A stretch of 64,000 bases of DNA from Anolis carolinensis (Eukaryota), in assembly GCF_035594765.1 (NCBI RefSeq), contig NC_085842.1, positions 140,381,036 to 140,445,035 on the forward strand. The letters are read 5' to 3'. Positions 12,680-50,584 of the stretch are shown piece by piece (within the stretch, counting starts at the first letter, position 1; each line of letters begins with the position of its first letter). The notes beneath the pieces were generated by a model, which saw nothing but the letters and a program-made list of their open reading frames with translations, was not told the DNA's origin and did not search any database. Position numbers and translations under genes: made by a program.

Positions 12680-12975
12680 AAGCTCATGGAAGTTGTAGTT
12701 TGGTGAGATACCAGCATTCTTTGGCAGAGAAGGCAAAAATGGGAAAACCACCATTTCCATATTTTTCATAGCATTGAGCCATAGCAGTTAAAGCATTGGT
12801 TCTCAACCTGTGGGTCCCCAGGTGTCATGGCCACAACTTCCAGAAATCCCAGCCAGTTTACCAGCTGTTAGGCTTTCTGGGAGTTGAAGGCCAAAACATC
12901 TGGGGATCCACAGGTTGAGAACCACCAGTTAAAGTGTTGTTAAACTGCATTCATTCTACAGCGTAGATGCATCCT
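12680..12975. mobile_element. PIF/Harbinger-type palindromic MITE (GGGTGCATCTACACTG family) carrying a nested hAT MITE
   Basis: Right end TTCTACAGCGTAGATGCATCC and interior match 20656-20875; left end degraded. Confidence 0.6.
12794..12926. mobile_element. hAT MITE family A (nested)
   Basis: Same sequence family as 5985-6119; 8-bp TSD AGTTAAAG (12786-12793, 12927-12934). Confidence 0.88.
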
Positions 12976-16188: not shown

Positions 16189-16641
16189 GATCAGTTGATA
16201 GTTCAATTATGTTTTAACTTTTGAATTCTTTGAATTTTAATCTATAATTGTTTATAATTGTGTAAGTCCTCTTGTGTTCAAACAAGGGACTAGGTGATCT
16301 ATAAATAAAAATATAAAGAAACTATGCCTGCTCACAGTAGCAGCAAAGTGAGACAAGAAGCAGCTCTATTTCTAGTCAGAGAATTTCATTCTCCAAACCC
16401 AATACTGTCAGCTCTTCAATTCTTAGGAAGGGTCTAGGCAGATGTCTTTTTCATTCCTTTGAATTTTTTTGTTCCTTTGAACTCAACCTAGTTGTTTTCT
16501 CATTCAAAGCACATGCTTTCTAAGACACTCTTTCGCTCTCTGCAAACCCTTCCATATAAAGCTTTCTATATGCCTAGAGATGCACATGTCTGTGTTTTTC
16601 AAGTTATTAGAGGTCAGCATGGTCTACAGTAGTGTTTATAG

Positions 16642-16775
16642 CCGTGGTTCTCAACCTATGGGTCCCCAGTGTTTTGTCCTACAATTCCCAGAAATCCAAG
16701 CCAGTTTACCAGCTGTTAGGATTTCTGGAAGTTGAAGGCCAAAACATCTGGGGACCCATAGGTTGAGAACTACTG
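16642..16775. mobile_element. hAT MITE family A
   Basis: TIRs as in 5985-6119; perfect TSD GTTTATAG (16634-16641, 16776-16783). Confidence 0.92.
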
Positions 16776-18012
16776 GTTTATAGGAACACACCTTACTGAA
16801 GACAGTGCCACAGCAACAGTGCATGCATAAGTACAAAAGACCATTAAGCAATGTGTGAAATGATAAATACATCCTCTAGGACTTCTGCTGTTCAAAACAT
16901 AACAGCAATCACCAGCACTTAAAGGCACATGCACACACATACAAAGTGTAGCATGTGGGGGAGGAGAATTTCAAAGAGAGAAGAATAAAGTATAATCTTC
17001 ATTTGAATGTATCAGAATTAAAAAAAATCCCTTTGTGCTTCCAATCAAAATGTAACTTTAAAAAAGATAAACTTGAAAGAAGAAAATATTGGGTTAACTT
17101 ATAAGGTTTTTTTTTTTTTAAGTAGAAGGCACTTTTAAAAATTCCCAAGAGTCTGCCCAGGGCAATGGAGATGTCCGAGTTCTACAAATAGTCCAAGGCA
17201 TCTGTCACAGTTAATTTAAGAACAATTCACCTTGTTCTCCTAAAAGACAATGGATAAGATGATCTCCAGGGTCCTCTCTTTAATTCCATAAACTGTTTCT
17301 AATACAAGATTTCTAGATACATTGCTAACTATTATTACTGTTATTGTTAATATCAGAGTACAATAAGGAGAGAAATGCCAGTTACCTTAAAAACCCACAG
17401 AGGAGTAATTTTTTCTGATTCATATCAGCTGCAGAACTGATGTTTTAAAATTGCACACAGACCTGCAGCTTCAGCTGCATAAGCAGAAGCAGATGTTTGA
17501 AGGAAGAAGCTAGGGCAAAGCCTACCCTTGTGGGTACGCACATCCCAACATAAAAGGATAGCTAACTTAATTGGAACATTTCTTTGCTACCGAAACTACC
17601 ATCCAAGCTCCAAATGTGTATCTTACTGCCACTGCTACATGCACCAGACTCTCATTAACCACACAAACAGCTGTGCTGCTTTCTTTTTCAAGCTGTCAAA
17701 CCTGTTGCTTGATTTTGCTTTCCAGTCAACATGCCTTCACTCAAACAGCTTCCATGTCCCTTCCCCGCTTCATAATTCTATGTCTCAACAGTTATTCAAA
17801 GAAGCTTTGAACTTAACCCACACTTTCCTCCAAGGGCTGTATATGCTGGGAAATGACAGATGCTCTGAAATGCAAGATTTTTGGACAATGTTTCCAGTAT
17901 GAGAAATGCCAGGGCAAAGGCCTATATCAAGAAAAGCGTGTTATAACTGATGAGTAGCACAATTCTATTCACATTTATTCAGATGTCGGTCCCACTATAT
18001 CAATGGGACTAG

Positions 18013-24462: not shown

Positions 24463-24967
24463 TCAGAGAGACATACTTACATATAATTTTTCTTTAACTC
24501 AAAACCTTTATTTCTGAGTAACATACAAATGGTTATGGTATAAGAAAATTTCTTAAGTCTAATTGATTTCAATGAAAGAAGTGATCTTGTGTTTGACTGC
24601 CTCACTAAAATCTATGAAACTTCAAAGTATGGTGCATTATTTGATTCAGACTCATAGTTAATGAAAAAAGAAGAGGAAGGTTTATTTATTTAGATTAGTT
24701 ATTTATTCAGTAAACCACTGTTGCTAAAGATGGTTGATTTGTTTTCTAAACTAATCCATGCACAAAAGAAGAGAAAATAGTTTTGGTCATTTAAGCTTCA
24801 TAGTGGAAGTACTTTCCTTTCTTACTGGCCAAATTTGTTTACAAGGAAAACTTCAAAAGACGGGACTAATTTCATCACCACGGGGTAAAGTAAGGCTGGG
24901 TGAAAGCTTCAATCCTACACACACTTTCCAGGGAGTAAGTTCCAGTGAACCTAGAATGATTCGTTTT

Positions 24968-25778
24968 CAGAGGCGGTCCAACCATAAGGCGAAATAGGCA
25001 TTTGCCTGTGGCGCCATCGTCCCGGGGGCACCATCGTCCTGGGAGGAGGGCACCACTCTCCACCTCCTTCTCTTTCGGGCCTTCCAGCAGCCGCGCTGGG
25101 CCTTCCGGCCAGCGCAGACCCACCTTCGCACCACGCAAGCCCACCTTTGGGGCCTTCAGAGATTGTGAGGTCTGTAGGAACTTGGAAGCTAGGTATGTGG
25201 GGTTTATATATCTGTAGAAGGTCCAGGGTGGGAGAAAGAACTTTTCTTTGAAGCAGGTGTGAATGTTGTAATTAATCACCTTGATTAGCATTTAATGGCC
25301 CTGTGGCTTCAAGGCCTGGCTTCTTCTTGCCTGGGAGAATCTTTTTTTGGGAGGAGTTAGCTGTCCCTGATTGTTTACTGTCTGGATTTCTTCTGTTTTC
25401 AGCGTGTTGTTCTTTATTTATTGTCCTGATTTTAGAGGGGGTTTTTTTTAATACTGAGGGCTATCTGGGTTATCTAAGTCCACACTGTCCTATATCCCTG
25501 TTCAATGTTTAGTGCTAAATTTGCAAATATAGTAATTCCTACATAACATTACCATGTATTGAACTGCTTTTTCTATTGATTTGTTGTAAAACATGATGTT
25601 TTGGTGCTTAATTTTTAAAATCATAATGTAATTTGATGTTTTATAGGCTTTTCCTTTATACTTCCTTATGATCCAACATTTTCGCTTATCCAACGCTTTT
25701 ATTTTTCAGTGATTGGTTTGGGGGGGGGCGCCAAAATTCTGTTCGCCTACACTTGAAAAATACCTAGGGCCAGCTCTG
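24968..25778 (-). mobile_element. Composite non-autonomous hAT (Tip100-like ends), copy 1
   Basis: Ends CAGAGGCGGTCC…GGGCCAGCTCTG; perfect 8-bp TSD TTCGTTTT (24960-24967, 25779-25786); reverse complement of 41723-42556. Confidence 0.92.
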
Positions 25779-26986
25779 TTCGTTTTTGAGTAAATGGACA
25801 TGGGATTGTGCTGCATTTCTCTGCTTCTAAATAATGACTTGATATTTAAATGAAAAGGAGTTGATAAGTGCCAAAGTTTACAAAAACGACTTCACTGCCT
25901 GCTGCATTCTCGTTCACTATTCCTTTCTCTTTGCTCCTCAAGAGTTTAATTATATAAGAAATGTTCACAGTATAAATACAACCAAACTCTCATATCCTGT
26001 CAGACAACTTAGTATTGCAAACCTGACTAAAAAATACTGGCGACACATTTCAGCCCTGCATTGCTCTATCTTTATGAGTAGTATAGTTTAGTCTAGAGAG
26101 GCGCTCTGTTGAATAAGATGAGCTCAATCAAGGTCAGGACACAAATATGATAGTAGACTCACCTTTCCCTGCTCCTTTTCTCTTCCCCTCCCAGAACTAT
26201 ACATTTATGTACCTCTGGGGATATGAATTTATGTACCTAATAAGCTCCTGAGAAAATAAAGATGTTTCATTTCAAGCTCTGGAGGTTGTATCACATCAGA
26301 AATATGCCTTTTGTCACCTTCAGAAACATACTGTGTTCCTCTGCCAAAACTGTTATTGCAGAATTATAAAAAAGGCCTTTCTGTTACGGTCACCTTGGTC
26401 CATGCACTAAATGAAACAAGGGAAAGAGTTGGCATAAGATGTGGATTTTGAACAGAGCTAGAGAGTCGTTTTCAGTCCAAAGTCAGGTCGTGGCACTATC
26501 ACAACTGTTTGTGAGAACTGGGATGAAGGAAGTTTACAATGCAAGACAGTTCTGCAGCATCTCGCTATGAAAGCACAGTGCACATGGTCATATCAGCATC
26601 ATCATAAAGAAAACTTTTTTATGCCATTCATGCCCATATATATGATTGGTTCATAAAACCTTCTATTTGTCTAAGAGCATAATGTGAGGATTTTGTTTTT
26701 TCTAGCACTGTTGCTTATATTTCAAATTGAATCCCATGCTAGGATATCAATAAATATTAAAGGAAATACCATACATTCTACCCAGTAGCACTTTCTGCAC
26801 TTTATATTACCATTGTAGTGTCCATTAGAAAAAGTTTAATTTTAAGTATTTTATTGACATTTATCTAATTAATAGTATCTTGTACCCCACTTATAATAAA
26901 CGATTTAAATCTTTCATGGCCCCCACTACCCCCCCCCCAGCCAGGGCTGTGTCTGGGGTCCTGGGATTGATGAGCCCATCCACTAA

Positions 26987-27072
26987 GGCTGGATCTACAC
27001 TGTCATATAATCCAGTTGAATGTAGTTAATCTGCATTATGGAACTGGATCATATGGCAGTGTAGATCCAGTC
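26987..27072. mobile_element. 86-bp palindromic Harbinger-type mini-MITE
   Basis: GGCTGGATCTACACTGTCATA / TATGGCAGTGTAGATCCAGTC inverted arms. Confidence 0.75.
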
Positions 27073-28804
27073 ACAGTGAGAAGACAAACAGAAGACAAAA
27101 AGCAACTTTATAAACTATCGGCATTTGTTTTGTCCATGTTACTAAAAATTAATTATTTTATTAGGCAGATGGTGTCTTTTAACTTTGTCGGCACAACCAC
27201 ACTCCAATAAATAGAACAGACTTAATCTACAAGACTTGGATTGGTTTATTATGATGAGTTAGAATTCAATAAAGTGTCTACATGAAAAATCACAATGAAC
27301 TTCCAGAACTTTGTTGATGGTCAAAATAGTGAGAGAAATCTATCAGAAGACTTACTGCACAAAATCTTTCACATTAAAAGTATATACTTACAACACCGTT
27401 TTTGACACTGACAGAAGCCTGATTAGATTTCTGAAAACAATTTATGATAAGTTAATGTTAAGCATTAATGCTGCTTATTACTTATAATTAAATCTGGACA
27501 AATTGTGATTCAAAAATGGAAAAGCACTTTTCAGATAAACATAAAAAGGAGTTAAACTTTAGGACTGGCATTAAACACTTTGAAAAAAAAATTCTACTTT
27601 AGAAGCCCTTGATATCAGATACTGGTCTAGCAATGCACAGCTGCCAATAAACTGTGAAATTTAAACAGTAATTGTTTTCCATTAGGAGGGCAGAAAAACA
27701 GTTATAAAAAGGACCAATTAATAAAAAAACTAGATGTGCTTTTAAAAGACATTTGGTTTAAACCAAGCTGTTTTAAACCAGCCAATCGGGAAGTCCTCAG
27801 TTGCTTGCTTGTCTCTTCTCCTTCCAGTTTCTGTCTCCATTTGACCACTCACACTCCACACAAGAAAATGAATGGCATCAGAATTTAAGTACAATGAACT
27901 TTCAAATATTTTTAAATTGGCATATGAAAAAGCTGCTTTATAAGATAATTAATTTTCTGTAATAATTGAAGAAGAAGAAACGGAAATTCACAATTTGGCA
28001 ATACATTGATCAGGATGAAACAAATTGCCACAGAGGTGTCCAAGCTCTGGAGTTCTTCATTTTATATCTTATACAGTACACCCATAATTATATTATATAT
28101 TCTAACAGAAGAATAATCTAGAAGAGTAGGCACAAGCTTAATAAACCCACCAATTGTAACAGGGGTAAGAGACTCTACCAGACCAGCCTCATATGGCTTT
28201 GGAATTAAGTTAGGTCCTCTGTCCAAATTCTAAAAGAAGAAACCCAAAGAAATATTCAGGTATATACTTGACCTCTCCTCTTCCCTCCATGAGCAAGCAT
28301 TTGCTCTTCCTATGCATTCATTATCAAAGGCCGTTTGCTCGGCATCCAGAGGCCTACTGAAGCAAGTAGAGATGATTTGCTACCCGTTTGTGTTTAGACA
28401 AATCCAGCTTGGCAGCACGCCTGGATGTGCTTGTAGAAGTGAGGTAATGGCTCAGAGGCAGAAGCGCTCTGACTCAGATGTCTCAAGCTAATGAGCTCCT
28501 TATAACCCAACTTGTTTTTACAAATGCACAATCCATGACAATGTTGGTATGAATAAAGCTATCAGAGAAACTCAGCTCTGATGCTGATGTCAGCTTCCAT
28601 ACCATTGATGTTACTCTTCTTCAGGAGCTCAAACTCAAAGCTTTCAAGGAAGGTTTGCTGTTACATTTGCTATTTTAAATCAGGATTGGGATTCAACAGT
28701 ATTGGGACCTTTCCAGATTAATTTATATTATCATTCTCCAACACACAAAGAAAAAAAAGTACAGTAGATTTGTTTTTGAAGGCAGAATTAGGAAGCATGA
28801 CTTG

Positions 28805-30188: not shown

Positions 30189-30306
30189 TTAGAAATTGTA
30201 TGCAATTTATAGGATTCTCTGAAACAATCCAAGTTTTGACACCATGGGAAAATAATGGACAATTACTTCTTTGCAGTAACAAATATATTACATGTATAAT
30301 ATGATA

Positions 30307-30629
30307 CAGTAGAGTCTCACTTATCCAAGCTAAACGGGCCGGCAAAAGCTTGGATAAGCGAAAAACTTGGATAATAAGGAGGGATTAAGGAAAAGCCTAT
30401 TAAACATCAAATTAGGTTATGATTTTACAAATTAAGCACCAAAACTTCATGTTATACAACAAATTTGACAGAAAAAGTAGTTCAATGCGCAGTAATGTTA
30501 TATTGTAATTACTGTATTTACGAATTTAGCACCAAAATATCACGATATATTGAAAACATTGACTACAAAAATGGCTTGGATTATCCAGAGGCTTGGATAA
30601 GCGAGGCTTGGATTAGTGAGACTGTACTG
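30307..30629 (+). mobile_element. Tc1/mariner MITE
   Basis: TIR CAGTAGAGTCTCACTTATCCAA/TTGGATTAGTGAGACTGTACTG, TA flanks. Confidence 0.93.
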
Positions 30630-32000
30630 TACTTTTGACAATAGTGAGAGCATATTGTTATTCACTGCATTATTTAGAAAATGACAACATTTAGACAACA
30701 TTGCTTGCTTCCCCCCCCCCCCCCACATTAGCCCATTTATTATAGGAGTAAGGGTTTTATTCCCCAAAAAGAATCTTAAAATAATAAAGAAAGAAATGTA
30801 ACAAGTACTATAAAGAGCAACATAATAATTTATAGCAGCAGCAAAAACAACAAAATAGTATTGGCACAATACCACTTATTGTTTCTTTAAAGACATATCT
30901 CTCCAAGCTATGATTCTATTACTCCTTAGTAAAACAGCATAGCAAATTGCTAAATTTGCTAGTTTATATAAAAAAATCTTAGTTTATATTGAAAAAAGTG
31001 CAACTGGTGACAACCAGAAGTAGTTTTACGTTGTGTGAAGAACTCAGTGGCACTTTGTCCCTGAAACGTATTAGAAGTGTGTGGAAACAGAGGAGGACTT
31101 TCGCTTGATGAGGTCTCTAGAATGACAAAATTCCCTGTGAATGATCATTGATTCTCCAATCTGTGCCTGTCACATGCTAGAAGTCGATGGACTGCAATTT
31201 CTATCATTCCTTACTGTTGGCCATACTGAGCAAATCTGAGGGGAGTTCTAGTCTACCAGCATTTAGAAATCCACACATTACTCTCTCCCTACCCTGGATG
31301 TTTAAAGACTTGTCTAGACATGTACATCTATTGAATGAGACACACAATTTCAAATGAAGTCTATAATTTCCTAAGCAGAATACAGTAAGCCTTCATCCAG
31401 CATTCTGGGTTGCAAGATTTTAGTGGTTTATTATTCATGTTCCAAAACTGATGTATAGCAGAAATGTTTCTATCTCACAATAAAAAATTAGCCAATAAAA
31501 CTAAGTTTTAGATTTGGATTTTTTTTAAAAAAAGGGTCTTCCATTTCCCCTCCATTTTTATAAAGCTTCCACAGGATCTACATAAAATTTGGGCCCTGTT
31601 CAGGCTCATCGTATCCAGCCAAGCTATTCTTATCACAGGAAACCAACTGTCTGCCGCCATATTCATGTTTGGCTCTGGTACAAACTTCCTCTCTTGAAGG
31701 AGCACACCTGTGGAGGTTACTTTCAGACCTAAACAACCTGCTCACTCACAATCACAATTCCTCTCTCACAGAAACAAAAATCAACTTCTCTGTTTTTGCA
31801 GCCCTTCAAGGCAAAATCCACAAAATATGCACACACATATTAATACTACAAATATAACTCCACTTACTTCATATATTTAGAGGTAATAGTTTGACTTAAA
31901 GATGTTTCAATACTATAGGAAATACACAGAAAGGTTGAGTGATTTATAATTACTTATACAGTATTGTTATTTGCCAGTGCTAAAAAGCAGCAGTTTTCCA

Positions 32001-36935: not shown

Positions 36936-37129
36936 TTCATTGAATGCTGCACAAAATCAAAATAGTTACAACAGTAGGCTATTACACCAGTATATCAGGA
37001 AGAAATGTGACTGGTAAAACTTGTAACTCACTGATTTTTAGAAAATGGACCAGTATAGAATAAGCTGGAAACACAAGAAGAACAAACAACTTCACATGTA
37101 AACTAAAAGAATGAACCCTCTTTCTAAAT

Positions 37130-37264
37130 CAGTGGTTCTCAATCTGTGGGTCCCCAGATGGTTTGACCTTCAACTCCCAGAAATCCTAAAAGCTGGTAAA
37201 CTGGCTGGGATTTCTGGGATTTGTAGGCCAAAACACCTGAGAACCCACAGGTTGAAAATCACTG
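37130..37264. mobile_element. hAT MITE family A
   Basis: TIRs; TSD TTCTAAAT/GTCTAAAT (7/8). Confidence 0.9.
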
Positions 37265-38905
37265 GTCTAAATCTTTGAAGAACGCTGAAACTTTTCAAAT
37301 TTTATAGCACAGATCACTCTTTGCCTGCCAAGCCTGAACCAAGGGCAATGAAGTGGATGCTTGCTCATTACTACCCTTCGGCCAAAAGTGCAGTGTACTG
37401 TGGGCAAAACAAGAGCAAACTTAAAACATCCACCATGTTCAGCTGGGCGCCACTCCATATGGGGAAGTTAGAATCAAAGTGGAAATCTACATTTTATTGA
37501 ATGAAATGCTGGATAATTATTCCCTGTTCTTCTTCAAGCCATCCAAGTGCCAGTCCCTATCTCACCCCTTCATCATGACTTATTACGTTCCTGTTACGTT
37601 TCTTTAGAGTTAATCAAATCCAAATGACTTCTTGCTCTAGTATGGCGTTTGTGTTGTCATTTGGATCTTGTGTTTTCTTTCCACTATGCCAAAGGGTGAT
37701 GACTCACTTGAATTACACATCACTAATAGCTAACAGAGACCCAATGGCATCCACACCAAAATGGCAATTATATCACTGAGGAAGCATGAGGCCTCCTGGA
37801 GTTCCAGGAAAGAAGCACACAGTCATGCTTCTAGGGCATGCTGGGAAAAGTGAAAAAATGGAGTCATCAGTAAATGGACATCGCTCAACAAAAACTGCCT
37901 GGGTGCAGCCACGTCCCCTAGAAATTTTTTAGAGCCAGCATTTTTATCAGCAATCATGATAAAAGCACGGAGCACTTACTGATAAAATGTGGAATACATA
38001 TTCATATTTACCCGTCTCTATGACAACAAGGGACAGTGGGTTGTCTAGAATAAATGCAATTACGATAAAGCAACAACATTGATGTCCTGAAGATAAACAG
38101 TGTGCTGGCAAAATCAACCTCAGTTGTAGAGAAGCTGAACAAAGAGAAAGGCTGCTGAGTAGGCATCCTAACCTACAATGTCAGAATATAGGTTAAATGT
38201 GGGACAGTTAACAGAGAAGAAGAGAGGGCACCAGTCACAGTGAGATACAAAAATGTCACAAAATGGGGTTTGATTGCTTATCAGAGAAACATTATGGCCT
38301 GAACCTTGGGGCATGGGCAGGGCAAATGAAGGACAGAATGCCCAATGGGTGCTTAGTAGTACTGTTGCTTGTCTGCATTCCCAGCTGACTGATTTGTAAT
38401 ATGCCATGGCAAGCGTGTATAGCATATGGAAGGAGTAGATACAGAGGTGAGGGTGGTCTTCACATAAGCTTGCCTAACTATGTAAAACCAACCCTCAGAT
38501 ATATGTAGAAGATTATTTTTATAATCTTTGTTATTTGTTTCAGCATTGTATTCCCCCTGTTTAATGCTTCGACCATTTCCAAGGAAGGGATTGAAAAAAG
38601 ACCCCTATAATGCTGGGCCCATACGCTTCTCAATACGACTATATTATGAACAAAATACTTCTAGAACACTGGAGCACCTTTTTCTAACTAGAGAACAGAA
38701 TCAGGAGGAGTGGCTAAAGCATGTCCTTATCTCTGTGATAAAATATATGCACTACTTGCTCAGAACATGTTCAGTCTCTGGAATCTGTGATTATCTGCTA
38801 TAGGTTCAAAGACAGATGGGTTTGTGAACATAGAAAGGAGGAAGCTGTTCCCCATCTCACAATAATTCACTAGGAATTATTCTTTGACCTTATTACAGCC
38901 ATATG

Positions 38906-39253: not shown

Positions 39254-39388
39254 CAGTGGTTCTCAACCTGTGGGTCCCCAGGTGTTTTGCCCTACAACTC
39301 CCAGAAATCCCAGCCAGTTTACCAGCTGTTAGGATTTCTGGGAGTTAAAAGCCAAAACATCTGGGGACCCATGGGTTGAGAACCACTG
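39254..39388. mobile_element. hAT MITE family A
   Basis: Perfect TIR CAGTGGTTCTCAACC; TSD GTCTAGAG/GTCTAGAT (7/8). Confidence 0.92.
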
Positions 39389-39890
39389 GTCTAGATAGAT
39401 GTGTAGTCAAAAGAAGAAGTAATAAAACTCAATCTGAGAAAGTGTCTAGGGCATACCTAAATATGAGTATGCTCGGCCTTTGAAAATGACTTTAAAGATT
39501 TTGATCTTTGTTCCATCCAATCTTGATGAAGCTTCACTGAACACTCTCCCTTTCTTTTTCTAATATTTTATATAAGATATTTTCTATTTCATCTGACCTA
39601 CTTCATATCATTTTTAAATCTATCATTTGAACTTTCTGTTCCAAACATTGTCATTTTTGTTATTATGTTTGCATTGTTTGAGCTTGTTATATTTTCCCTT
39701 TTCATCAGTTTTAAAATTTTGCATTGTTTTAAGCAGATACCAAAACACATACATTTTTTTAAAAAAAAGACTAACCAATCATCCCCTCCTGACCTCATGC
39801 CCATCCTTTTGTGACTCTCTAGAATTCTGATAACCACAGGTGTCCTTGCAAAGTACAACAAACGCTCAGGATTTAACAGCTTTCTTGAAA

Positions 39891-40060: not shown

Positions 40061-41480
40061 GTATTTAAATAATCACAGTTTAAAAAAATCTCCAGCTGTC
40101 CAATTTGAAGACATCTTTATAGTGCCCGAACAGTATAAGTACAGACTGCTCACTAAAAAAAACTGTAAAAGAGAAATATTATGTTGGGAGGTGAGAATAT
40201 GAGTGGAATAACTTAAGAAAGGAACCAAAACAACCCTTTTCATATATAGTTCCTTCAAGTACAGTACCACCAGAATGTCTTCAATGTTCTGGTGCTAAAT
40301 GAATCTTTCATTGTCACATAGGCACACAGCTATTCACGGTCAAGCTGAAAATGGGAACCTTAACCAATTGTTGGGTTTTCATGCGTTCTTTCCAGATTTT
40401 TCCATTTCTCCCAATTTCCACTGTGTGAGGAGTGTGGAACAAGCTTGGGGGAAACCCCTAGCCACTTTCATGGAAAGAAAATATATACAGAAAGCAGACA
40501 TGGTGTCATCCAAGACATAGAGATTTTTTATGCAGAAGGTTCCCACTTCAGTCTTTGCCATCTTCACATAAAGTTAAGAAGCACTCTTCCTTCAACACCT
40601 GGAAAGCTTCTGCCAGATATAGGAGACAATAGGGGGCTAGATGGATCAATCAACTGACAGTCTAAAGAAGGTAGCTTGGTCTATGAATTAAAATGTAGCA
40701 ACCATTTTCATCAGATATTTGAATCCAACACCTCATCCAAGGGATTACAAGAATTCTAACCCCCCTTCCTTCAGATGATTAGAGATAAAAAAAAGATAGC
40801 TTTGGGAACTGGATATGGATGATGATGGCCTTAATGTATAATGCTCAGGGCACATACCAAAGAGATGACTACGATCAAGAGCCTGGCCTTTTCTCTGCCT
40901 AGAGACTATACCCCCTCCCTTCTTGTTCTTTCTGGGGAACAGGGATTGTCCCAAACAACCTTGTCTAAAATCTGCCAACAGAAACTCCAAAGATTCCTCA
41001 ACAAAACCTGGTGGGTTTTTTTCCAGGAGTGGGAGATATTTGTTTTGAAAGAGCAAATGTTCTGGACATTTAAAAATAGTGTCCTGAATCTCCATAGCTT
41101 GGCATGTTCCGTCACGGGTTAGTGTGCCCCAGGCTACGAAGCTCTTTGTTAAATACACCTCAATCCTCCCTGATGAGCCACTTGCACTGAAAAAGCTACA
41201 TCTGACATGATACAGATGGTGAGCACAGGGAGACAAGCAGCAAAGACTCTGCAGTACACTTTGGGGGTCCCAGGGATTTTTTTTTTATGGAGGGGCTTTT
41301 CAACACCTGCTGTAACTCTAATCCTTCACCTTTTTGCAGACAGCCATGAAGGCACTCAGGGAGGTAACAAATACTGGCAGATTTTAAATAGCAATCTCCC
41401 ATGTGTGGCTAAATGGTTGGCACCTACTTTATGAAACAATTAATTATAATAATGGAATAAATTACAAACATGAGATGAAC

Positions 41481-41578
41481 ATGGGTGCTTTGAATGTGAT
41501 TGTCCTGCTCCTTGGAAGGGGGTTGAACTCGATGGCCCATGAGGACTCTTCCAACTCTATGATTCTGTGATTCTATGA
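41481..41578 (+). mobile_element. Short CR1 3' end
   Basis: Matches 19031-19133, including the (TTCTATGA)-like tail. Confidence 0.85.
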
Positions 41579-41722
41579 AACAAAAATAAGTCCCTTTCCC
41601 ATTTATTAAAAATGGATTTACTCCCTGATCTTCCAGGAGCCATGAACTACCTGTAGATCTCAAGTAGCAATGTCTAGCTCAGTAATGGTGGATGCAGAAT
41701 TTAATAATCTATAGGCTCAGAC

Positions 41723-42556
41723 CAGAGCCGGCCCTAGGTATTTTTCAAGTGTAGGCGAACAGAATTTTGGCGCCCCCCCCCCCCCAAACCAATCACTGAA
41801 AAATAAAAGCGTTGGATAAGCGAAAATGTTGGATAATAAGGAAAGATAAAGGAAAAGCCTATTAAACATCAAATTACATTATGATTTTACAAATTAAGCA
41901 CCAAAACATCATGTTTTACAACAAATCAATAGAAAAAGCAGTTCAATACATGGTAATGTTATGTAGGAATTACTATATTTGCGAATTTAGCACTAAACCT
42001 TGAACAGGGATATAGGGCAGTGTGGATTTAGATAACCCAGATAGCCCTCAGTATTAAAAAAAAAACTCTAAAATCAGGACAATAAATAAAGAACAACACT
42101 CTGAAAACAGAAGAAATCCAGACAGTAAACAATCAGGGACAGCTAACTCCTCCCAAAAAAAGATTCTCCCAGGCAAGAAGAAGCCAGGCCTTGAAGCCAC
42201 AGGGCCATTAAACGCTAATCAAGGTGATTAATTACAACATTCACACCTGCTTCAAAGAAAAGTTCTTTCTCCCACCCTGGACCTTCTACAGATATATAAA
42301 CCCCACATACCTAGCTTCCAAGTTCCCACAGACCTCACAATCTCTGAAGGCCCCAAAGGTGGGCTCCCGTGGTGCGAAGGTGGGTCTGTGCTGGCCGGAA
42401 AGCCCAGCACAGGCACCGGGAGGCCCAGCGTGGCCGCCGGAAGGCCCAAAAGAGAAGGAGGTGGAGAGTGGTGCCCTCCTCCCAGGACGATGGCGCCCCT
42501 GGGACGATGGCGCCACAGACAAGTGCCTAGTTCGCCTTATGGTTGGACCGCCTCTG
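41723..42556 (+). mobile_element. Composite non-autonomous hAT (Tip100-like ends), copy 2
   Basis: Ends CAGAGCCGGCCC…GGACCGCCTCTG; perfect 8-bp TSD GCTCAGAC (41715-41722, 42557-42564). Confidence 0.93.
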
Positions 42557-43185
42557 GCTCAGACACAGAGGCAATCCTAGAACCTGGCAAATGCAGCAAA
42601 GATTTAACCAGAATTCCCCACCAAGTTGTGAACTCTACACTCCAGTCACTATAATAGGTTATCATGAACAAGTGCATTTGATATAGGATCTAAAGAACCA
42701 GAACAGTAATCAGACTCCTTCCCACAAATATCCCATGGAGTTGTAAATGTTAACATTCAGAGAAAAAGTTTGGTAATTTCACTTCAGACTAGAATATTTC
42801 ACAAATGTAAGACAAGATAATTGTAACATTGAGAAAGATTTTCAGGATTTCTTTTGGTAATCAGCTAACACAGCACTGTGTAGTGAGGGACCCATTTCTC
42901 CTACAACTCTCTGTAGGCAGCACCAATGTATCAGCAGACCACTAGAAGCGATGCAACATTATTCCCATTCTTCAATTAAGCTGGTTTGTACAGATCTATG
43001 AGGTTGGCAGTGGTTTCCGCAGGATCAGAGAAGGATGGAAAACGCCACATTTATGGCCAATTTGGATCTGTTTGAGGTTTTTTAGAGGGTAAACCACCTG
43101 CAAAATATTACAGATACTTGGGGAGGGTGGGCTTCGAGGACTGCAAAAGTGGGGCTAAGGGGCATTTGTTGTGCTGCTGGCTCTA

Positions 43186-44157: not shown

Positions 44158-45218
44158 TCATAGAATCATAAAGTTGAAAGAGATCTCATGGGCCATCCAG
44201 TCCAACCCCTTACCAAGAAGGAGGAAAATCACATTCAAAGCACCCCCGAGAGATGGCCATCCAGCTTCTGCTTAAAAGCCTCCAAAGAAGGAGCCTTCAC
44301 AACACTCCGGGGCAGAGAGTTCCACAGCTCTCGCAGTGAGGAAGTTCTTCCTGATGTTCAGGTGGAATCTCCTTTCCTGTAGTTTAAAGCCATTGTTCCG
44401 CGTCCTAGTCTCCAGGGCAGCAGAAAGCAAGCTTGCTCCCTCCTCCCTATGACTTCCCCTCACATATTTATACATGGCTATCATGTCCCCTCTCAGCCTT
44501 CTCTTCTGCAGGCTAGACATACCCAGCTCTTTAAGCCACTCCTCATAGGGCTTGTTCTCCAGACCCTTAATCATTTTAGTCACCCTCCTCTGGACACCTT
44601 CCAACTTGTCAACATCTCCTTTCAACTGCGGTAACCAGAATTGGACACAGTATTCCAGGTGTGGTCTGACCAAGGCAGAATAGAGGGGCAGCATGACTTC
44701 CCTGGATCTAGACGCTATACCCCTATTGGTGTAGGCCCAAATCCCATTGGCTTTTTTATCCGCCACATCACATTGTTGGCTCATGTTTAACTTCTTGTCC
44801 ATGAAGACTCCAAGATCCTTTTCACACGTACTGCTGTCAAGCCAGGCGTCCCACATTCTGTATCTTTGCATTTCATTTTTTCTGCCTAAGTGGAGTATCT
44901 TGCATTTGTCCCTAATGAACTTCATTTTGTTAGTTTCGGCCCATCTCTCTAATCGGTTAAGATTGTTTTGAATTCTGTTCTTGTCTTCTGGAGTATTAGC
45001 TATCCCTCCCAATTTGGTGTCATCTGCAAACATGTCTTCTAACCCTTCTTCTAAGTTATTAATAAAGATGTTAAACAGAACCGAGCCCACCACTATTGAA
45101 AAAAAGAGATCAAATTAGTTTGGCATGACTTCTTTTTGATAAATCAGGTTGACTATTAGTGATGACTGCATTCCTTTCTAAGTGTTTGCAAACCACTTCC
45201 TTAACTATCTTTTCCAGA
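44158..45218 (-). mobile_element. 5'-truncated CR1 LINE with internal deletions, retaining the RT FADD motif
   Basis: Peptide LFNIFINNL…FADDTKLGG…KCKILHLG…RPHLEYCVQFW; upstream piece LEKIVKEVVCKHLERNAVITNSQ…KSCQTNLISFF; (TCATAGAA)-type tail at 44158-44170. Confidence 0.96.
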
Positions 45219-50090: not shown

Positions 50091-50261
50091 CTGTAAACCT
50101 AGGATATTTGGAAGGATTTTTAAGAGTCATTCCAGATCAGTACACTATTGGACCTTGATGCGCAAGTGTGATGCCTGCCTCTTAGGCAGAATCTCAGAGT
50201 GGGAACTTATATTAGGAATTGGGATAGATGCTATGAGTTTTGTGATTGGAGTACATGAGTA

Positions 50262-50584
50262 CAGTAGAGTCTCACTTATCCAACATAAATGGGCCGGCAG
50301 AATCTTGGATAAGCGAATATGTTGGATAATAAGGAGACATTAAGGAAAAGTTTATTAAACATCAAATTAGGTTATGATTTTACAAATTAAGCATCAAAAC
50401 ATCATGTTATACAACAAATTTGACAGAAAAAGTAGTCCAATACGCAGTAATGCTATGTAATAATTACTGTATTTACAAATTTAGCACCAAAATATCACGG
50501 TATATTGAAAACATTGGCTACAAAAATGTGTTGGATAATCCAGAACATTGGATAAGTGAGTGTTGGATAAGTGAGACTCTACTG
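50262..50584 (+). mobile_element. Tc1/mariner MITE
   Basis: Perfect TIR CAGTAGAGTCTCACTTATCCAACA/TGTTGGATAAGTGAGACTCTACTG; TA TSD. Confidence 0.95.

Follow-up and report, generated by a model that had tools for sequence, protein, structure and literature searches.

Two copies of one composite element, in which hAT arms enclose pieces of other transposons, lie in the window (the whole stretch of DNA that was analysed, 64,000 nucleotides, which is free of N stretches). The copies, their ends and the modules of copy A are as follows.

41723-42556, + strand: copy A, the whole composite, 834 bp
24968-25778, - strand: copy B, the same mosaic with all junctions identical, 811 bp
41715-41722 and 42557-42564: TSD of copy A, GCTCAGAC, identical 8-mers
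24960-24967 and 25779-25786: TSD of copy B, TTCGTTTT, perfect 8-mers
41723-41734, + strand: left TIR of copy A, 12 bp, CAGAGCCGGCCC
42545-42556, - strand: right TIR of copy A, 12 bp, CAGAGGCGGTCC when read on the minus strand
41723-41811, + strand: left hAT arm, 89 bp, with the subterminal motifs AGGCGAAC and GGCGCC and a poly-C run
41812-41997, + strand: internal piece of a TcMar-N7/N8_AC-like Tc1/mariner MITE, 186 bp
41998-42037, + strand: short filler, in which 41999-42027 resembles a TIR arm of the MITE at 26979-27078
42038-42349, + strand: Poseidon-type Penelope-like fragment in sense orientation, 312 bp, made up of the last ~140 nt of an ORF and a ~126-nt spacer (part of the pLTR)
42293-42300, + strand: TATA-like box TATATAAA in the Penelope spacer, pointing toward the GC-rich tail
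42350-42556, + strand: GC-rich right arm, ~207 bp including the TIR (to 42544 without it), 67% GC

BLAST of copy A and its flanks against the 64-kb window returned a single full-length partner (41720-42556 versus 25781-24968). In pairwise alignment the two copies were 96.7% identical, with 27 substitutions over 809 aligned positions (K2P 0.034) and three indels of 4, 2 and 21 bases, of which copy A carries the 21 and the 4 as extra bases. The similarity starts and stops exactly at the terminal CAGAG...CTCTG, and beyond the TSDs the flanks are unrelated. The TIRs of copy A are alike at 10 of 12 bases and have the terminal motif CAGAG at both ends; YARNG is the terminal motif of hAT TIRs (PMC3014272). 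The degenerate TIR pattern CAGAGSCGGYCC was matched four times in the window, against 0.19 matches expected, and all four are the ends of copies A and B, three of them fitting the pattern and one end of copy B fitting it with 1 mismatch.

The coding capacity of the element is small. The longest ORF inside it has 118 aa, and Pfam matched neither the 138-aa ORF of copy B nor any other ORF of the element. No hAT transposase was found by Pfam among the six window ORFs of at least 163 aa, where the sole match was one weak RT, and the 64-kb window holds no autonomous hAT with CAGAGSCGGYCC ends. With their 8-bp TSDs, CAGAG termini and lack of Pfam-matching ORFs, copies A and B are non-autonomous hAT elements. 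A 273-aa ORF at 44272-45093 (- strand) has an RVT_1 match (E 2e-4, below the curated cut-off) and is probably what remains of a decayed LINE or Penelope element.

Both arms together amount to ~296 bp and enclose ~540 bp of cargo. The left-arm motifs AGGCGAAC and GGCGCC reappear inverted in the right arm, where the repeat GGACGATGGCGCC also occurs twice and a hairpin near 42389-42411 is prone to indels. CpG o/e is 0.56 in the GC-rich tail versus 0.20 for the window. Logan contigs were compared over 41300-43000, from three runs of organism A (X1, X4 and X9, from three studies) and one run of the related organism B (X10). They place an indel hotspot of the family at 42359-42416, where a hairpin TGTGCTGG...CCAGCACA and short direct repeats occur; 39-52 bases are skipped there in many organism A contigs, and copy B is short of 21 bases. 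The same comparison revealed a very high-copy repeat at 41471-41584 (...GGGGGTTGAACTCGATGGCCCATGAGGACTCTTCCAACTCTATGATTC...), ~140 bp upstream of copy A, with huge contig numbers in both organisms. A few contigs join this repeat directly to the hAT start (joints 41570>41723).

A first-pass annotation had described imperfect 12-bp TIRs around a mosaic, assigned the element to the hAT superfamily on its 8-bp TSDs, and reported the mosaic with the same junctions again at 24968-25778 with its own perfect 8-bp TSD. It had also named an internal mariner MITE piece without either mariner TIR, a ~300-bp segment carrying TATATAAA and a GC-rich tail. All of these descriptions were borne out by the alignments, TSDs, terminal motifs and base composition given here.

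Origins of the cargo

The mariner piece corresponds to positions 51-237 of the 335-bp MITE copy at 50255-50589, and it matches the interiors of three full MITEs (50255-50589, 30301-30634 and 6193-6533) at 86-88%. The full MITEs keep the TIR CAGTAGAGTCTCACTTATCC and the TA duplication, as at 50258-50277 with TA on both sides, whereas the piece in the composite has neither, both 28-bp MITE TIRs being missing. Judged by this similarity, 41812-41997 derives from the interior of a Tc1/mariner MITE.

The filler had been read as part of a Harbinger MITE arm. The resemblance to an arm was upheld at a modest level, local alignment of 41999-42027 with the two arms of the MITE at 26979-27078 giving 22/27 and 21/28 bases, a score that 2 shuffled sequences out of 500, and 1 out of 500 pieces drawn at random from the window, also reached. 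The match was absent from the blastn-short output. These ~28 bp of filler thus bear only a modest likeness to the arm of another MITE. That MITE is ~100 bp long, with arms GGCTGGATCTACACTGTCATATAATCCAGTTGAA and GGAACTGGATCATATGGCAGTGTAGATCCAGTC.

The origin of the third module was traced with four probes of 17-27 nt out of the Poseidon_Ac consensus (File S1, PMC11167929). Probes nt 2444-2470, 2552-2574, 2606-2622 and 2650-2667 match at 42098, 42214, 42282 and 42332, in the same order and with 2-3 mismatches each. Three of the four also match the corresponding sites of copy B, and no further match occurs in the window, none being expected by chance. The 312-bp module follows the order of Poseidon_Ac nt ~2398-2667 (ORF end, stop, TATA-like spacer), but it is diverged and has ~23 extra bases, which are also present in the abundant Penelope family of the genome. 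An RT/GIY-YIG ORF, a complete hammerhead and the natural 3' tail are all missing from it, in contrast to Poseidon_Ac.

The right boundary of the Penelope piece falls just before the ATG of the ORF, at CTCTGAAGG, which ends within the CUGANGA box and ahead of the GAAAC part, so that the hammerhead is incomplete. In the contigs, the genome's own Penelope family continues beyond 42321 as ...CCTCTGAGGATGCCTGCC, and where the piece stops it goes on as CCTCTGAGG-ATGCCTGCC, the start of the next Poseidon_Ac ORF. Because Penelope elements have their natural 3' ends 111-118 nt inside the ORF, with a hammerhead that extends across the ATG (PMC11167929), the piece is truncated at both ends and lacks a complete ribozyme. 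A search of the whole window with Rfam at gathering score found no hammerhead and no other family, and probes for an intact Penelope pLTR-ORF junction and hammerhead had no window match.

From the probe matches, 42038-42349 can be considered Penelope-derived and of the Poseidon group. The initial suggestion of a Penelope pseudo-LTR is therefore right as to Penelope origin, given four ordered matches, but not as to a whole pLTR, since only the 3' end of the ORF and the spacer are present. The box TATATAAA is a putative promoter element, a role suggested by the literature on pLTR promoters (PMC11167929). Elsewhere in the window, a tandem array at 52152-52717 consists of 4.6 units of 124 bp with 96% matches between units, and these units match composite positions 42063-42189, the part from the Poseidon ORF 3' end, at ~82%.

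As to how these pieces came together, our best guess is that they would have entered by template switching or as filler DNA when the gap left by a hAT excision was repaired. This route is favored because every cargo piece is without both its own ends. Filler DNA in excision-gap repair is known for Ds-type elements, which are non-autonomous cut-and-paste transposons that acquire such DNA in repair. Pack-MULEs and other Pack-type elements of plants, which are defined by host-gene fragments, also have patchwork interiors and amplify as units. The composite is like both groups in having patchwork cargo, probably gained by repair or capture and then amplified whole. It is unlike Pack-type elements in that the cargo identified consists of transposon pieces only, and the GC-rich tail is without recognizable gene origin. 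The Pack-type label given to the element at first was thus a loose one, as no host-gene fragments were found in the cargo and no Pfam match was obtained.

The alternative that deserves most attention is that the cargo represents nested insertions of a mariner MITE, another MITE and then a Penelope element into a hAT MITE, with later deletions that removed the ends of the inserted elements. We consider this quite possible, although the less probable course of events. Insertion followed by partial deletion is the history that Novick et al. reconstructed for hobo-N families (PMC3014272), and the Penelope piece shares its 5' truncation and its sense orientation with retro-insertions. However, none of the pieces retains either of its natural ends: TIR and TA are missing from the mariner piece, and the Penelope piece ends at the ATG, ~110 bp short of its natural 3' end. 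At least four separate deletions would be required. Uptake during gap repair therefore remains our preferred explanation.

Family identity and related composites

The catalogue of Anolis carolinensis DNA transposons by Novick et al. (2010; PMC3014272) contains a close counterpart. Its Table 1 lists hAT-N6_AC as an orphan family with 964 copies, a length of 810 bp and the 12-bp TIR CAGAGSCGGYCC. This TIR is common to hAT-N6, hAT-N7 (288 bp) and hAT-N8 (329 bp), which have no known autonomous partner, and hAT-N6_AC is given a TSD preference of NTTRYAAN and a mean divergence of 0.6% (PMC3014272). The text of that paper has no description of a mosaic make-up of hAT-N6_AC, and the literature searched has no mention of the family beyond it.

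The element described here is like hAT-N6_AC in its TIR, its length (811/834 bp versus 810 bp), its 8-bp TSD, its lack of coding capacity, its high copy number and its lack of a known autonomous partner. It is unlike hAT-N6_AC in that NTTRYAAN fits neither TSD of the two copies (GCTCAGAC and TTCGTTTT), and in that copies A and B are 3.4% apart, compared with the published mean of 0.6%. Copies A and B may be older members, belong to a sister subfamily or come from another anole species. With a probability of roughly 85%, by our estimate, the element belongs to a family of non-autonomous hATs (most probably hAT-N6_AC, or else a sibling with the N6/N7/N8 TIR) and its composite cargo moved as a unit. 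By the published TIR and length, hAT-N6_AC is the most probable identity of the family.

It is rather unlikely, on balance, that the element belongs to a separate family of the same kind, older or undescribed, that has only the N6/N7/N8 ends in common with hAT-N6_AC. Such a family could have arisen, for example, from a hAT-N7/N8-type MITE of 288-329 bp gaining ~540 bp of cargo independently. The arm length of ~296 bp, near those of hAT-N7 and hAT-N8, speaks for it, as do the 3.4% distance and the TSDs. So does a 132-bp contig (X4 record 20) running across the joins between the mariner, filler and Penelope parts. Its identity there is only ~89% (13 mismatches, 2 gaps), and it is therefore neither copy A nor copy B. 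Against it stand the close agreement in length, the fit of the degenerate TIR at both ends, and the great abundance of the GC tail in organism A, which agrees roughly with 964 copies, depth being a soft measure. Under the favored assignment to hAT-N6_AC or a sibling, the arm length also suggests that a short MITE of the N6/N7/N8 TIR group may have taken up the ~540-bp cargo at one point.

Composite hATs of this kind have been known in anoles since 2010, and the element is not new. The novelty implied by the first-pass annotation was not sustained, as both hAT-N6_AC and cargo-carrying anole hATs are already in the catalogue (PMC3014272). The hobo-N hATs of the anole carry Penelope, SINE, CR1 and Chapaev pieces, and the cargo multiplies as these families amplify (PMC3014272). 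Families hobo-N1 to hobo-N15_AC resemble the present element in being non-autonomous hATs with interiors of partly deleted pieces of those four kinds, but they have the ends TAGGCTTSATC, are 1.9-3.4 kb long and stem from an autonomous parent that is known, hobo_AC. Poseidon and SINE pieces are also carried by Helitron-2N3_AC (PMC3014272). Together with a Helitron-like array in the window (51759-53455), within which the 124-bp tandem units at 52152-52717 lie, this Helitron shares with the composite the property of being an anole DNA transposon with Poseidon-derived sequence, but both are rolling-circle elements, which lack TIRs and 8-bp TSDs and capture DNA by another mechanism.

A further MITE of the window, ~135 bp and self-complementary, starts with CAGTGGTTCTCAACCTG and ends with its inverse. 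It is like hAT-N1_AC of the anole catalogue (135 bp, 57-bp TIR) and, like the TcMar-N7/N8_AC TIR, links the genome to anoles. Its five window copies are listed here.

5985-6119: 135-bp MITE, first copy
~12788-12934: second copy
~16636-16780: third copy
~37125-37270: fourth copy
~39254-39393: fifth copy

Movement and spread of the chimera

Evidence for movement comes from comparing the copy A site in the two organisms. In organism A the site is filled in all three individuals (X1 record 8, X4 record 23 and X9 record 30), with contigs that run through the right end of copy A into the same flank. In organism B, a 966-bp contig (X10 record 10) spans 41546-41717 and then directly 42560-43000, so that 41717 is joined to 42560 between flanks ~4-6% diverged from the window. 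A single GCTCAGAC is left, and the 842 missing bases equal the 834-bp element plus one 8-bp TSD. Organism B therefore has an exact empty site where copy A lies in organism A, and the insertion occurred by transposition, not duplication.

Other contigs of organism A enter the element from different surroundings. X4 records 17 and 18 have 345-420 bp of foreign flank followed by the element start exactly at 41723, and in X9 a total of 167 loose ends fall at 41723, with outer letters that agree at only 0.35, as unlike flanks do. With two loci, unrelated flanks, distinct TSDs and an empty site in a related species, the chimera is mobile as a single unit and moved as such after its assembly. The proposal made beforehand that the whole chimera had transposed after assembly is thus confirmed by two independent insertions and the exact empty site in organism B.

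The reverse direction of transfer, in which the MITE and the Penelope family acquired the shared sequence out of the hAT element, is very improbable. Similarity by itself gives no direction, but in the Penelope piece the final ~140 nt of the Poseidon ORF stand in their native context, the mariner sequence is found within complete MITEs that have TIRs and TA duplications, and the mariner and Penelope parts draw far more contigs than the hAT-specific tail. Segmental duplication, which had been named beforehand as the refuting outcome and to which the proximity of copies A and B (within 17 kb of each other, in one window) might point, can be dismissed: homology stops exactly at the TIRs between unrelated flanks, the copies are in opposite orientation, each with its own perfect 8-bp TSD, the organism B site is empty, and other contigs start at 41723 behind different flanks.

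It is reasonable to think that transposition of the chimera depends on a transposase supplied in trans, which probably binds the shared ends. In such a model, a hAT transposase would recognize the terminal 12 bp (CAGAGSCGGYCC), with the subterminal AGGCGAAC and GGCGCC as probable further recognition motifs. The enzyme would excise the whole 0.8-kb unit and insert it elsewhere, leaving 8-bp duplications, and the fixed ~540 bp of cargo between the ~89-bp left arm and the ~207-bp right arm would travel along. As the cargo is fixed inside the unit, each hAT jump would also copy the mariner, MITE-arm and Penelope pieces.

The contigs also differ between organisms in the abundance of the family. Per variant position, the GC-rich tail has 16-56 contig variants in runs X1, X4 and X9 of organism A and 1-12 in organism B. 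Its summed depth relative to unique flank is ~1000x in X1 and X4 and ~20x in X10, values that are summed contig depths and not copy numbers and give a rough contrast between A and B, X9 being off X1 and X4 by about tenfold. The empty copy A site in B and the larger number of GC-tail variants in organism A are the basis for supposing a burst of the family in organism A after its split from B. That such a burst was driven by hAT transposase and dispersed a lineage-specific cassette with a Penelope promoter, possibly still active, is a speculative idea to which we attach little likelihood. The TATA box lies 50 bp upstream of a CpG-rich stretch, and if the burst did take place, each copy would plant a Penelope promoter at a new locus.

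As a discovery the element carries little weight. Composite hATs that amplify Penelope and SINE pieces are documented in the anole genome, and the ends and length of this family were already in a published table. It serves as a clean illustration: two insertions are documented, a sister species has the exact empty site, and module origins are resolved to base-level boundaries. A module map is now available for an orphan hAT family.
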